Shown: piece by piece, positions 9,777-43,400 of the stretch
How the letters are laid out: each line of letters starts with the position of its first letter
How positions within the stretch are numbered: the first letter of the stretch is position 1
DNA from: Selaginella moellendorffii
Lineage: Eukaryota > Plantae > Lycopodiophyta
NCBI RefSeq assembly: GCF_000143415.4
Contig: NW_003314373.1
Span: 1 to 64,000 of the forward strand
Length of the DNA stretch: 64,000 nt
Direction: 5' to 3'
Notes under the pieces: model-generated
The model's input: the letters and a program-made list of their open reading frames with translations, nothing else
What the model was told of the DNA's origin: nothing
Database searches by the model: none
Position numbers and translations under genes: made by a program

Positions 9777-10865
9777 ATGGCGGCAGCGTCCGCCACAGTG
9801 ACGCCGCCCATTCCTCGCAAGGATTCCCCCGATTCCACCGCGACTGGGAGCCGGATTGTCACGCGCCGCGCGGCGCTGGCGTCGCCGATTGCCGGGAGCA
9901 GCGTCAAAAGGGAAATGGGTGAGCAGCATCAAGAACTCCATAGCTCCCTCGCTCCTTCTTCTCATTCCTCTTCCTCTCACCCTAGAAAGATCTCGCCCCC
10001 TTCCAATGGCGCCACGATGATCGCCACCAGCAACGGCGCCGCCGCCGGCGGCGTGGACGAGATCTGGCTGACAATGCGCGAGGAGGCCCGCCGCGACGCC
10101 GAGGCCGAGCCCGCGCTGGCCAGCTACCTCTACTCCACCATCCTGGCGCACAGATCCCTGGAGAGAGCTCTGGCATTCCATCTGGGCAACAAGCTCTCGA
10201 GCTCCACGCTCCTCAGCACGCAGCTCTTCACCATGTTCGTCGACACTTTCATGGAGGACGCGGAGATGAGGGAGACGATCCGGGCCGACATAGCCGCCGT
10301 CCGCGAGCGCGATCCGGCCTGCGTCTCCTTCTCGCACTGCATGCTCAACTTCAAAGGATTCCTGGCGTGCCAGGCGCACCGAGTTTCACACCGGCTGTGG
10401 AACCAGGGACGCCAGTCGCTAGCTCTCGCGCTCCAGAGCCGGGTGTCCGAGGTGTTCCATGTAGACATCCATCCCGCCGCCAAGATTGGGCGAGGCGTGC
10501 TCTTCGACCACGCTACCGGGCTCGTGGTTGGCGAGACCGCCACCATTGGCAACAACGTTTCTATCCTACACAATGTGACGCTGGGCGGGACTGGCGCCAT
10601 GGGTGGTGATCGCCACCCAAAGATTTGTGACGGGGTGTTGATCGGGGCCGGGGCGATCATCCTGGGGCCCGTGAGGATTGGCGAGGGAGCCAAGATTGGA
10701 GCTGGGTCGGTCGTGTTGATCGAGGTTCCTCCGCACACAACTGCTGTGGGGAATCCGGCCAGGCTTGTGGGAGGGAAGCTCAAGCCCACCAAGCTCAAGG
10801 ACATTCCCAGTGAGACTATGGATCACACTTCTTTCATCTCCTCGTGGTCTGATTATGTCATTTAG
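9777..10865 (+). CDS. SERAT: Serine O-acetyltransferase (362 aa, intronless)
   Basis: SATase N domain (EPALASYLYSTILAH, RDPAC, FKGFLACQAHR), hexapeptide repeats (VDIHPAAKIG, DHATG, DRHPKI, GNPARL), C-terminal WSDYVI. Confidence 0.98.
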   Translation: MAAASATVTPPIPRKDSPDSTATGSRIVTRRAALASPIAGSSVKREMGEQHQELHSSLAPSSHSSSSHPRKISPPSNGATMIATSNGAAAGGVDEIWLTMREEARRDAEAEPALASYLYSTILAHRSLERALAFHLGNKLSSSTLLSTQLFTMFVDTFMEDAEMRETIRADIAAVRERDPACVSFSHCMLNFKGFLACQAHRVSHRLWNQGRQSLALALQSRVSEVFHVDIHPAAKIGRGVLFDHATGLVVGETATIGNNVSILHNVTLGGTGAMGGDRHPKICDGVLIGAGAIILGPVRIGEGAKIGAGSVVLIEVPPHTTAVGNPARLVGGKLKPTKLKDIPSETMDHTSFISSWSDYVI

Positions 10866-31924: not shown

Positions 31925-33269
31925 CTATGCCATGTAGGCGTGGGGCTTGTTGGCGTTGTCGTCCCAGGGCACTTGGAGATGGTAGCGGATGATGTTTTGG
32001 GCGCCTTCCACCAGTCCCCGGACGACGCTCGCGGCGGGCAAGATCTCATCGATCAATCCCACGCCCTCGCCCGCGTACATTGCCATCTCCTCGATCTTCC
32101 CAGTCGCGGAGGAATTGGGAACTTTTCCAGAGAAGCGCTTCACCTCTTCCTTCTGCAAGAGAATGGAGGGGGCTTAGAAAGATCTTTGGTGAAGTGTGAG
32201 CTCGATCTTACTTTGCCATGGACGATTGTTTCGCCGATCGTCACCTGCCCTTGCTCGGACTCGTCGGGGCCGAGCTTGTCTCTCCACTCCAGGAAAAATG
32301 GAGTTTTGATCACTCTCTGTGGAGCATTTGGCCACCGTTTCCTTCCGAAAATGTTGGTGAGCTCGGTATCGCCAGCGGACGCGGCCAGCACCATTTTCTT
32401 GTAGATCGGATGCGCATTCGACTCCAAGGTAGCAAGAAATCTTTCCAAGAAAAATGTAAGCTTTCGCGGATGAAAACTCAAAAACTATTCGAAACACTTT
32501 ACCTAGTTCCAAGGCAAACTCCCTTCGCACCAAGTGCCAAAGCAGCGACATAGCCACGAGCATCAACGATCCCTCCAGCCGCAATCACGGGAATCTTATA
32601 CTTCCAAACGGCATCCACAACTTTCGGCAACAGCGCGATGAGTCCCTCCTTCACGACCACAATTCTTCTCTACGTAAGTCTTTGAAAGAAAGTTTCAAGA
32701 GAAAATCACCACCTTTCCACGGACGTGGCCGCCAGCTTCAACACCTTGGACGATGATCGCATCCACACCAGCAAGCGCTGCGTCTTTGGCCTCGGCCACT
32801 GATCCTACCTGCGTGTGCGAAAACCCGAGAAAATCACGACAAAGCTGCTATTTTTTTTCTCACGAACCTGATGCACAACTTTCACTCCGCCTTGGTGCAT
32901 CTTGTCGACAAGATGACTCCCAAATTCACCCCAGTAAACCATCAGCACAGCGACACGCTCCTGGATCACAGCCTCGAGCATCTTCTCGTGTGGAAAATCC
33001 AGGATGATCCCCACTCCAAACGATCGATCCGTCAGCTCCCTGGTTCGCTTCACCATCTCCCTCAGCACCTCGGGCTCATCCTGGAGTCATCAAATTCCCA
33101 TTTTTCCTTGCAAAAAAAAAAAAAGGTTTTTTACCTGATCTGGAGCTCGAAGAACTCCAATCGCCCCCGCATTTGCAACCGCTGCTACGAGAGCAGGCCC
33201 CGAGATGTCTGGACCCAATGGCGCCTGGATTATTCCATGATCGAAACCAAGCAATCCTCCCCAAGCCAT
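31925..33269 (-). CDS. Nitronate monooxygenase / 2-nitropropane dioxygenase-family FMN oxidoreductase, multi-exon
   Basis: [70 protein letters not shown]. Confidence 0.93.
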
Positions 33270-33331
33270 AGCCGCGAGCGCCAAAAAGAGAAATGGAAAA
33301 CGTATCTAAGATCAACACAAATACTGGCAGA

Positions 33332-33338
33332 ACAAAAA
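33332..33338 (-). terminator. Putative RNA Pol III oligo-T terminator for the tRNA-Pro pair
   Basis: Minus strand reads ...CCCTA TAGGCTG TTTTT GTTC just past the 3' end of tRNA-Pro(AGG). Confidence 0.6.
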
Positions 33339-33345
33339 CAGCCTA

Positions 33346-33419
33346 TAGGGATGACAGGATTTGAACCTGCGTCCTTTTGTTCCCTAAACAAACGCGCTAC
33401 CTATCTGCGCTACATCCCT
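33346..33419 (-). tRNA. trnP: tRNA-Pro(AGG) with land-plant plastid trnP-type body
   Basis: Minus strand AGGGATG TA GCGC AGATAGGTA GCGC G TTTGT TT-AGG-GA ACAAA AGGAC GCAGG TTCAAAT CCTGT CATCCCT A; all four stems pair; anticodon at 33385-33383; T5 run about 8 nt downstream. Confidence 0.93.
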
Positions 33420-33494
33420 GTGTGTGCTCCACAGCATGCCTCTTCTTTCCTCGGCTTTTTATACTTTCATAGTGTTTCTTTTAACGAACGTCGA

Positions 33495-33568
33495 TAGGGA
33501 TGACAGGATTTGAACCTGCGGCCTTTTGTTCCCGAAACAAATGCGCTACCTATCTGCGCTACATCCCT
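33495..33568 (-). tRNA. trnP: tRNA-Pro(CGG) with land-plant plastid trnP-type body
   Basis: Minus strand AGGGATG TA GCGC AGATAGGTA GCGC A TTTGT TT-CGG-GA ACAAA AGGCC GCAGG TTCAAAT CCTGT CATCCCT A; anticodon at 33534-33532; differs from the neighbour at only 3 positions. Confidence 0.93.
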
Positions 33569-33769
33569 CCTAATCCCTCTCCACACAAGGTGGCGGACTC
33601 CACTTAAAGGATTGCCACGAAACAATGTAGGGCTGCATCAGCATAAAATGACATCGCTGGCCACGTCATTGCCACGTCAACTGACTAGGACGATTTCCAG
33701 CCGTTGGTTCAAGGGTTGCAGCTGAAAGACGATGGTGGTAATCGCTACGCTTACCATCGTTTAGTCGTA

Positions 33770-34189
33770 ATGGAGCAACCGCCCAGGGTGGAGGTCACGG
33801 CGCTGCCAACGCGCTCCTATCTGGTAAGCACCGTGTGGTTCTAGTTTGTGATCAATGCTTCGATTTTTCTTGGCAGGAAAACAGTGTGGTACCTGTTCTG
33901 ACGCAGGGGCTCGAGGCCTTGACGCTACAGAGGTAACAACGAGATTTTTCTTGGGTATTGTTATCGTGTTTCTAGCAGACCGCAAAGGCCATTGGAGTAT
34001 CTGGCGAAGTTCATGCTAAAGAATGTGCCGCCGCGGCCGGATCCTTTGAGCAATGTCAAAGCGGAAGTTATTCGTTTGGTTCCTCGGCCTCTGGCGAACG
34101 AAGTTGATGCTACTGTCACTTATCACAAGTGCACGACTAGCGCGATTCTTCCTGTTCCTCTCGTGTCAACGCAAGCTCCAACAAGCTAG
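33770..34189 (+). CDS. Dpy-30 motif protein; exons 33770-33823, 33877-33932, 33979-34189
   Basis: Spliced product MEQPPRVEVTALPTRSYLENSVVPVLTQGLEALTLQRPQRPLEYLAKFMLKN matches the Dpy-30 consensus (LPTRAYLDQTVVPILLQGL...RP..P.E.LA..LLKN). Confidence 0.85.
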
Positions 34190-40465: not shown

Positions 40466-43400
40466 TGTGAGTGCATGGAATATGGAACAGGAATACAGAA
40501 ATGTGCATATCCATTAGCCCAAAAACCCTAGCTTATATACAGGAGCGAGTGGTCCGGATTGAAACCAATCCGACGGCTACCAAAATCCCACTACGCTAAT
40601 ATTAGTATATAGCATCGTAGCCGTACACTTGGCCCTCACATCATCCCCTCCTCTCGGAATAATGGAAGGCCATCAGGGGTCTCTTGTAGATGGGCCGGGA
40701 TCTGGAGGAACGTCAGGAGGAGGCATCGGCAGATCTGTAGACGGTATTAACTGCTCCTGATCCCTTTGTATGAAGCGTTTTAACCGTTGCACATGCACAA
40801 TCTCCGGAGGATCGGCTTGCTGAACGTCATGCCGAACCTCATAAACTTGTGGTCCAACTTGCCGCAACACCTAATACGGTCCTTTCCACTGCGCAAGGAG
40901 CCCCTTAGATAAACCACGTACCGTAAGATGGGGAAAACGGACTAACACCAAATCATCCACTTTGTACTCCGCAGATGGACGATGATGGGAATTGTAGCGC
41001 CGTTGTTGTCCCACTTGTACGCGGCCTAAGTGTTCAGCAGACTCTGCTCGGACAAGTGGAAGAATGCTTGTCAAATATTGATCCCATGACCTAGCATCAG
41101 GAGCTCGTGGCAATCGCGAAGGTAAACCCAGCTCTGTTGGTAATATTGGATCATGACCATATAGAAGTTTATATGGTGAAGCACCAACAGAACTCTGCAC
41201 CCCTGTGACATAGGCATACCGAAGAGACGGCAAATAATCATCCCAATCCGAATGCTGAAAGTTCACATACTTCGCAATCATCCCTTTGAATGTCCGAACA
41301 AGCCGTTCTACCAGACCGTCTGATTGTGGATGATAAGCACTCGTAAAAGTGTGGTGTATCCCCAACTGAGATGTCAAAACATGAAATACCTCAGCCATAA
41401 ATGCAGGACCATTATCCGAAAGAATCCGCTCTGGACAAGAATGCTGGAACACCACTCGATTGAGGAGGAAGTATCCAACAGCAGTTGCAGAGGCACTAGC
41501 AAGAGCACCAACTTCCACCCAACGAGTCAAGTAGTCAGAAGCAATAATAACATACTCATTGCCAACAGTCGATCGTGGAAAAGGTCCCATAAGATCAAAC
41601 GCCACCAACTCAAACGGACGGGAAACTGCAATTGACTCCAACCGTCCTTCCGCAGCACAAGGAGGAGTATTACGAGCTTGGCACCAAACGCAGCTACGCA
41701 CATACCGGATAATATCATGTCGCATCTCTGGCCAATAGAAAGACCTGCGCAGCTTCTCGGTGACACGACGGTGTCCCATATGCCCACCTAGAATAGAAGA
41801 ATCATGGTAGGCATGGAGAAACCATGGAATAAACACCAAAGGCACCACCAGCCGTAAATGATCATCAGGATCCGTCCCCACAAAATAAAGAAGGCCATCT
41901 TCAAGGCGATATTGAGAATGTAAATGCCGAAAAGGCAAGTCATCAGCAAGTGATGCAGGATTCTCAAACCCATCTCGAAACCTTCGAATCCACGGCTCAA
42001 TCTTTTGAGCCGCGCGAACCTCATCAAGAGAAGGTAGATCTTGCTCTGCGCCCTGTGGACACTGAACGTCAAGGACAGCAACCGCCGACGGCACAGAATC
42101 CTCATCTAGAAAATCCACAGATGCTGGAACAACAAGTTCGTCAGAAACATGAGAAAGGAGTGGAGAAGGAAGAGGAGCTCGAGAAAGGGCATCAGCATCA
42201 GCCATAGAACTCCCTGGGCGATGAACAACATCGAAATCATATATCTGAAGCTTCAAAGCCCATCGAGCCGTACGACCAACCAGGTTCTTCCGCTTCAATA
42301 ATGAAGTAACAGCAGCATGGTCACCTTCAAGTAACGTCCGAGAACCATGTAGATATGCATGAAGTTTCTCGAAACCCCAGACTGCTGCTAAACACTCCTT
42401 CTCCGTCGTGGAGTAGTTCATCTCCGCTGGTTGTAATGTACGGCTTATGTATGCAATGGGATGGCGTTGACCAGGCACACTCGAGCTCTCTTGCATCAAC
42501 ACACCTCCAAGACCAATGTCAGAAGCATCCACGCGCAAAATAAAAGGTCGAGTGTAGTTAGGATATGCCAAAACTGGAGGAGTCGTCAACAGCTCTTTGA
42601 GATTCACGAACGTTCGCTCACAATCCGGAGACCAGATGAAAGATGACGTTGATGACTTCAGCTCGCAATGGTGTAGTGCGATCGGAAAGATGATCCACAA
42701 AACGACCGAGATACTGCACCTTACCCAAAAAGCACTGCACATCATTCACACACTTCGGAGTAGGGAACTTTAGAACAGCCACAAGTTTGTCAGGATCAAC
42801 TTGCAAACCCTCACGAGAAATACGGTACCCAAGATAAGTTGTGTCCTTGGACCCAAACACGCACTTTGACCGCTTCAACTTTAAACCAACGTCGCGTAGC
42901 CGATCCAATACTTTACAAACATCACGAACGTGCTCCTCCCACGTCCCCTCCGAGTGGATCAAGACATCATCAATGAAGTCAGCCGTCACCTCCAGCATAT
43001 CGCAAAGAACTTCGTCCATCATCCGCTGAAAAGTTGCTGGAGCATTGTTCAAACCAAACGGCATCACCAAGAACTCGTACAAACCAAATGGTGTACGAAA
43101 AACAGTCTTAGGAATATCTTCTTTGGCCATCGATACTTGCCAATACCCAGAAGCAAGATCTAGCTTGGTGAACCAACGACTTCACCCCAAACGATCCAAG
43201 AGATCAGCAGTGTGAGGAAGAGGGTACACATCCGGGATTGTCACTTCATTTAACGGACGATAGTCGATGCAGAAACGAATACTCCCATCAGGCTTCATCA
43301 CAAGATGAGGTTCACATGCCCAAGGACTCCGCGACTTCCGAATAACACCCTTCTCCAACATCTCCTTGACGTTTGCACGTAAAATTTTGATCTCCTTGGG

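Follow-up and report, generated by a model that had tools for sequence, protein, structure and literature searches.

Two tRNA-Pro genes with the anticodons AGG and CGG were identified in nuclear DNA of Selaginella moellendorffii, and most likely they are functional nuclear genes that derive from plastid trnP-UGG and serve translation in the organelles, import of their products being postulated by analogy with Selaginella kraussiana. In the window, i.e. the whole 64-kb stretch of DNA that was analysed, ARAGORN called exactly these two tRNA genes, both for proline and both on the minus strand. The genes and neighbouring features were located as follows.

33346..33419, minus strand: tRNA-Pro(AGG) gene with plastid-type body, 74 nt (ARAGORN, Rfam, cloverleaf fold).
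33495..33568, minus strand: tRNA-Pro(CGG) gene with plastid-type body (A1-U72, A73), 74 nt (ARAGORN, Rfam, fold).
33134..33269, minus strand: first coding exon of a nitronate-monooxygenase-like gene (Pfam PF03060 and translation).
33080-33133, minus strand: GT..AG intron of the nitronate-monooxygenase-like gene, 54 nt (spliced RNA contigs from two studies).
9777-10862: serine acetyltransferase ORF, found exactly once in the public gene index, on scaffold GL377677.1 of assembly GCA_000143415.2 with coordinates matching those of the window, which forms the start of that scaffold.

Both tRNA genes scored far above the gathering score of 29 for Rfam family RF00005, with 68.6 bits for the AGG gene and 70.1 bits for the CGG gene, and the minimum-free-energy structure was a full cloverleaf for each. 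Common to both are the acceptor stem AGGGATG/CATCCCT with A1-U72, the discriminator A73, a GCGC D-stem, the anticodon stem TTTGT/ACAAA, the motif GGTTCAAATCC, and a single G-U pair in the T-stem. An earlier note, made from the sequence, had described two 74-nt tRNA-Pro genes with perfect cloverleaves; the three methods confirmed the genes and their fold, ARAGORN returned the same anticodons, and each of the structural elements listed in that note was found in both genes. The two sequences are identical at 71 of 74 positions, with one mismatch at the wobble base (gene position 35) and the others at gene positions 27 and 48. A34 of the AGG gene is a candidate for conversion to inosine. Over 50 nt on each side, identity between the flanks was 10/50 and 11/50, which is the random level; both genes have thus been kept intact while their flanks diverged to random identity.

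The nitronate-monooxygenase-like gene was assigned by a PF03060 match with an E-value of 4.3e-06 and 26.8 bits, slightly under the curated cut-off of 28 bits. Its ATG at 33269 lies 76 nt past the AGG gene on the same strand, and the tRNA units are accordingly situated 76-300 nt upstream of this start codon. The pair is contained in a 500-bp interval (33270-33770) between divergent ORFs, with the minus-strand ATG at 33269 and a plus-strand ATG at 33770; the plus-strand region at the latter was not covered by any RNA contig from the two RNA runs inspected. Elsewhere in the window there are PPR genes, a gene for a DEAD-box helicase and a retroelement ORF; a look-up of the exact proteins gave no match for two of the PPR ORFs or for the helicase ORF. 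A 624-aa ORF at 40871-42745 on the minus strand carries RNase H, integrase zinc-binding and integrase core domains and represents part of an LTR retroelement pol.

The window is nuclear DNA, and the neighbours of the tRNA pair are spliced nuclear genes. In X1, an independent set of DNA reads from the same organism, contigs bridged every junction between gene and flank, with spans of 33124-33431, 33402-33523 (in two alleles) and 33546-33775, and RNA contigs linked the tRNA region to the spliced mRNA next door. An assembly chimera, a possibility raised in the earlier note, was ruled out by these DNA contigs across the junctions together with the RNA contigs that continue into spliced mRNA.

For the ancestry of the genes, metagenome contigs were scanned with a pattern in which the 5′ acceptor strand and the D arm were fixed and the other 48 positions left free. 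The scan retrieved 120 plastid-type loci, all with the anticodon UGG; AGG or CGG occurred in none of the 120, consistent with the claim that land-plant plastomes do not use these anticodons for proline. A tRNA-Trp(CCA) gene followed 110-360 nt downstream in 96 of the 120 reference loci, and one of the loci closest to the S. moellendorffii genes (L065) had the Pfam-confirmed order rps18-rpl33-psaJ-trnP-trnW-petG-psbE. The reference loci with this trnP context are land-plant plastomes.

The nearest relatives retrieved were land-plant plastid trnP-UGG genes, with 6 differences in 74 positions for the AGG gene and 7 for the CGG gene; overall identity of both to plastid trnP-UGG is 91-92%. In comparison with 19 distinct intact plastid-type sequences, every difference was unpaired and all 21 stem pairs were identical to the plastid state, to which the G-U pair in the T-stem also belongs. 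The D loop and the variable loop contribute two differing sites each; the others are position 38, the wobble base and, in the CGG gene alone, position 26. The proposal that the body is that of plastid trnP-UGG was thereby supported, with the closest sequences standing in a verified plastid context, and the expectation that differences would fall in loops or preserve pairing was borne out, all of them lying in loops.

Four derived loop states, A16, A18, A38 and G46 by gene position, are common to the AGG and CGG genes. In a maximum-likelihood tree the two were sisters (98/91) inside the plastid-type group; the split between plastid-type and Bacteroidota-type sequences in the same tree had weak support (59/76), as expected on 74 columns. 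With derived loop states in common and each gene closest to the other, the pair goes back to one transferred copy that was duplicated in the nucleus, as the earlier note had proposed. Plastid origin is the best reading of the sequence comparison and agrees with the published phylogeny of the S. kraussiana genes (PMC11573648). According to the preferred reading, one copy of plastid trnP-UGG moved to the nucleus and duplicated there, and the wobble U then became A in one gene and C in the other. Ancestry, shared loop states and sister grouping all favour this course of transfer, duplication and anticodon diversification, which the note had put forward.

Eukaryotic cytosolic (E-type) tRNA-Pro is defined by C72/C73, whereas A73 marks the prokaryotic and organellar type (PMC12152171). 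Both S. moellendorffii genes end in ...CATCCCT-A, with U72 and A73, and are therefore of the P-type and not of the E-type; U72/A73 is incompatible with the eukaryotic C72/C73 type (PMC12152171). On these two positions and the published type definition, affinity with cytosolic tRNA-Pro is excluded, and the claim that the genes are unlike cytosolic ones is upheld.

A third copy, with the anticodon UGG, had been expected in the earlier note and was present in the S. moellendorffii transcriptome, in RNA contigs from two studies. The contig (1127 nt in run X5 and 160 nt in run X6) matches 33347-33420 with 7 differences, among which 33385 T>A changes the anticodon of the AGG gene to UGG and 33381 T>A yields U38 as in plastids. 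Its flanks are unrelated to the window, and in the first 30 bases downstream of the copy there is no T-run. The discriminator base of this contig is seemingly not A. From the RNA contigs alone, the UGG copy may be either nuclear or encoded in the plastome; the S. moellendorffii plastome has 14 different tRNA genes (plastome papers).

Nuclear genes for tRNA-Pro of a plastid-like (plike) kind with the anticodons UGG, CGG and AGG have been described in S. kraussiana by Berrissou et al. 2024, PNAS (PMC11573648), where they group with plastid trnP and were traced to a plastid UGG gene that was transferred, triplicated and altered by mutation at position 34. In S. kraussiana each of the three tRNA species is expressed, and A34 of the AGG species is inosine (PMC11573648). 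In plastids of that species only the plike tRNA-Pro are enriched and the eukaryotic-type stays out (PMC11573648). A and B boxes and a T-stretch downstream are present in the genes, two of the three also have CAA upstream, and in total RNA the plike UGG and CGG species are as abundant as the eukaryotic ones (PMC11573648). Selaginella plastomes vary in tRNA content, and proline tRNAs were reported lacking in most of those studied (PMC11573648); the S. moellendorffii mitogenome has no tRNA genes (PlantRNA 2.0 preprint). The caution in the earlier note, that import into Selaginella chloroplasts might already have been reported, was thus justified for S. kraussiana (PMC11573648).

By extension from S. 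kraussiana, the mature S. moellendorffii tRNAs would receive CCA, A34 would be converted to inosine, and the molecules would be imported into chloroplasts (PMC11573648). Inside the chloroplast they and a UGG copy would take the place of the plastid proline tRNA, and the same tRNAs may also serve the mitochondria, which encode no tRNA, and the cytosol.

The genes could instead encode functional tRNAs that in S. moellendorffii act solely in the cytosol or solely in mitochondria and do not enter the chloroplast. The high abundance of plike UGG and CGG species in S. kraussiana total RNA suggests some cytosolic use (PMC11573648), plastome tRNA content differs within the genus (PMC11573648), and a mitogenome devoid of tRNA genes (PlantRNA 2.0 preprint) points in the same direction. 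Nevertheless, the enrichment of all three plike species in S. kraussiana plastids to the exclusion of the eukaryotic-type tRNA-Pro, and the lack of proline tRNAs in most Selaginella plastomes studied, make this restriction unlikely (PMC11573648).

The following sequence elements were considered as signals for expression of the two genes.

33420..33494, minus strand: spacer between the two genes, 75 nt, without any run of at least three T by direct reading and script, and covered by RNA contigs.
33334..33338, minus strand: run of five T (T5), 8 nt past the AGG gene, possible site of Pol III termination for one gene or for both.
33603..33608, minus strand: TTTAAG, TATA-like by consensus resemblance only, at -40 to -35 of the CGG gene.

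An A-box-like TAGCGCAGATAGG and a B-box GGTTCAAATCC are present in both genes; such internal boxes are carried by any bacterial-type tRNA. Within the spacer, TATAAAAA occupies 33463-33456, i.e. -44 to -37 of the AGG gene. CAA was absent at -10 to -1 upstream of both genes, and the spacer contains no T-run after the CGG gene. At the T5 site (33334..33338), an allele in the X1 run has T4 according to a reading of the listed changes. A simple model of Pol III expression is not matched in one respect: the AGG gene is followed by T5, whereas the CGG gene lacks a T-run of its own. A scan for sigma-70 promoters and intrinsic terminators gave nothing relevant, as expected for a eukaryotic locus.

The tRNA region is transcribed. 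RNA contigs from two studies covered 32900-33079, skipped the intron, and resumed at 33134-33530 (X5) or 33134-33499 (X6). On the minus strand, this coverage begins within the CGG gene, takes in the spacer, the complete AGG gene and T5, and leads into the spliced mRNA. About half of the CGG gene was covered, and no RNA contig reached its 5′ part. About a dozen RNA runs from several studies contain a comparable share of the stretch; run X18 (0.17 of sampled words) was dropped as unrelated to the tRNA genes. These data are assembler contigs of mRNA-type libraries, and mature CCA-tailed tRNA lies outside their evidence; as contigs can merge overlapping transcripts, their continuity indicates neither the polymerase nor a single transcript. 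The X6 contig has a length of 4585 nt and extends about 4 kb beyond its mapped part, far longer than one nitronate-monooxygenase-like mRNA. A34 of the AGG gene was unchanged in the long transcripts, which as mRNA-type contigs are uninformative on the mature tRNA. In X5, contig sequence gives way to Illumina adapter after 33530, a position that lies one base 3′ of G37 in the CGG tRNA. As a single hint, this end could reflect a reverse-transcription stop at m1G37 on a 3′-extended precursor, or cleavage in the anticodon loop.

Transcription would proceed from the internal A and B boxes with the TATA-like elements upstream. Termination by Pol III requires a T-run, and as the spacer contains none, Pol III that initiates at the CGG gene is not expected to stop before it has passed the AGG gene. 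Transcription from the CGG gene to T5 would then yield a two-tRNA precursor to be cut by RNase P and RNase Z. That the two genes are transcribed as a single unit, either as such a Pol III precursor ending at T5 or with the tRNAs cut from the leader of the nitronate-monooxygenase-like mRNA, is a tentative suggestion, somewhat doubtful at present. Should it hold, the supply of both organelle-bound proline isoacceptors would be coupled, possibly also to a protein gene, and the fragment end beside G37 would be a reverse-transcription stop at m1G37 on the unprocessed precursor.

A related alternative regards the tRNA units as mainly elements of a Pol II 5′ leader of the nitronate-monooxygenase-like mRNA, acting as processing or regulatory signals, with tRNA as a by-product or absent. 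Their position on the same strand 76-300 nt upstream of the ATG would suit such a leader, as would the RNA contigs of two studies that run from the CGG gene interior through the AGG gene into spliced mRNA. On the other hand, contigs merge overlapping transcripts, the X6 contig is too long for one mRNA, and an upstream Pol II start would have been expected to give contigs past the 5′ part of the CGG gene. Moreover, anticodon diversification combined with strict conservation of the whole cloverleaf points to decoding, and the leader alternative appears distinctly improbable.

Constraint on the two genes was supported by variation within the species. In the X1 run, the flanks and the spacer, 358 nt together, carried 17 SNPs and 6 indels, of which 8 SNPs and 1 indel fell in the 75-nt spacer, and the tRNA genes had none. 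With a uniform rate assumed, the Poisson probability of zero variants in 126-148 nt of gene sequence is 7e-5 to 2.5e-3. This pattern in S. moellendorffii is consistent with a signature of purifying selection within the species. Furthermore, a blastn comparison of the whole 64-kb window with the 120 plastid loci gave matches only at 33344-33422 and 33493-33583, which verified the statement that no plastid DNA flanks the genes.

In the same metagenome scan, decayed plastid-type trnP copies were encountered in four loci (L009, L077, L049 and L111) on contigs of about 33-44% GC, the contigs of L009 and L077 having about 44%. The four have deletions of the anticodon arm or T arm, and stem breaks occur among the decayed copies. 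Probably they are pseudogenes of plastid descent that reside in the mitochondrial or nuclear DNA of plants.

That the S. moellendorffii pair represents two dead, functionless trnP copies in a decaying NUPT is conceivable in so far as nuclear genomes harbour many organellar tRNA copies (PlantRNA 2.0 preprint) and the CGG copy lacks a separate terminator. This reading is nonetheless very improbable: the flanks are free of plastid DNA, the stems are all intact with the 6-7 changes confined to loops, the genes carry no variants against about 23 in the surrounding 358 nt, and the new anticodons fall exactly in the set of the expressed S. kraussiana genes (PMC11573648), while truly decayed copies (L009, L077 and L049) show deletions and stem breaks.

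The identical search pattern was run on 185,579 bacterial and archaeal genomes and returned 25 loci. The genuine bacterial loci belong to Chitinophagales, Saprospiraceae and other Bacteroidota and have 10-18 differences in 74 positions. The tRNA-Pro(UGG) genes of Bacteroidota (L123, L125, L128, L130, L132, L135, L137-L139 and L146) have the same A1-U72/A73 acceptor and T arm as plastid trnP and differ mainly in the anticodon stem. Loci with 7-8 differences were situated on short low-GC contigs (L122, L124, L127, L133, L136, L140, L142, L143 and L145) labelled as Zoogloea oryzae, Streptomyces griseoloalbus, Photobacterium alginatilyticum, Modestobacter italicus and others, and their tRNA-Pro is identical or nearly identical to angiosperm plastid trnP-UGG. 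These contigs are probably plant chloroplast contamination of the bacterial assemblies. One metagenome contig with 57.7% GC (L112) carries at 558-946 a cluster of tRNA-Pro(UGG), tRNA-Trp(CCA) and tRNA-Arg(CCU), in which the tRNA-Pro has a plastid-type acceptor and T arm, an anticodon stem richer in GC, and A38.

That a bacterial tRNA-Pro gene was acquired horizontally, from Bacteroidota for instance, in place of plastid transfer is highly improbable: the acceptor stem and T arm are shared with tRNA-Pro(UGG) of Chitinophagales and Saprospiraceae and the S. kraussiana nucleus does possess a bacterial-like tRNA-Arg (PMC11573648), but the 10-18 differences of the bacterial genes include the whole anticodon stem, plastid genes differ at only 6-8 positions with the anticodon stem TTTGT/ACAAA in common, and the S. 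kraussiana homologues group with plastid genes in the published phylogeny (PMC11573648).

The concept of plastid-derived nuclear tRNA-Pro genes was published in 2024 for S. kraussiana (PMC11573648), and the S. moellendorffii genes are a further example and not a discovery; with the central claims already published, the pair opens no new question. S. moellendorffii is unmentioned in the main text of that study (PMC11573648), the text of PlantRNA 2.0, which includes the species, is silent on plastid-type tRNA-Pro genes, and a full-text literature search for the combination returned nothing relevant. New are the S. moellendorffii copies themselves with their purifying-selection-like signature within the species, and their tandem layout, which has no internal terminator and is situated where the 5′ region of a nitronate-monooxygenase-like gene is transcribed. 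S. moellendorffii, a reference species, thus also has the plastid-derived tRNA-Pro family of S. kraussiana, in an intact and apparently constrained state, which suggests, without proving it, that transfer and anticodon diversification are older than the split of the two species. A second, well-assembled genome thereby becomes available for the question of how a bacterial-type tRNA gene became nuclear with its product returning to the organelles, and tandem genes that lack an internal terminator constitute a concrete, testable expression model.

Among known systems, land-plant plastid trnP-UGG shares with both genes the A1-U72 acceptor, A73, the D-stem, the anticodon stem and the T-stem. The nuclear genes differ from it in having AGG or CGG as anticodon, A38 for U38, and changes in the D loop and variable loop, and they have neither trnW-CCA downstream nor the psaJ/petG context. 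NUPTs with tRNA pseudogenes likewise place plastid-derived tRNA sequence in nuclear DNA; unlike these, the S. moellendorffii pair has no plastid flanks and no decay, and is constrained with changed anticodons.

Dicistronic Pol III tRNA units are known, e.g. the yeast tRNA-Arg/tRNA-Asp unit, as are tRNA-snoRNA units in plants. The S. moellendorffii arrangement resembles them in that a tandem of two small RNA genes is closed by a single terminator, behind the second. It deviates in that the 75-nt spacer is long, the second gene has a TATA-like element of its own, and co-transcription is predicted.

The bacterial-like nuclear tRNA-Arg(UCU) of S. kraussiana is similarly of prokaryote type, expressed from the nucleus and located in plastids, but it concerns another amino acid, is of bacterial or mitochondrial origin and is a single gene, in contrast to the plastid-derived proline pair (PMC11573648). 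In comparison with the description of the S. kraussiana plike tRNA-Pro genes, the S. moellendorffii pair is in tandem, 75 nt apart with no terminator between the genes, and it lies directly upstream of a same-strand protein gene and lacks CAA at -10 to -1. By that published description, the genes of the two species are nevertheless alike in being nuclear genes within one genus with a plastid-type body and the anticodons AGG and CGG, with internal A and B boxes and a T-stretch behind at least one gene.
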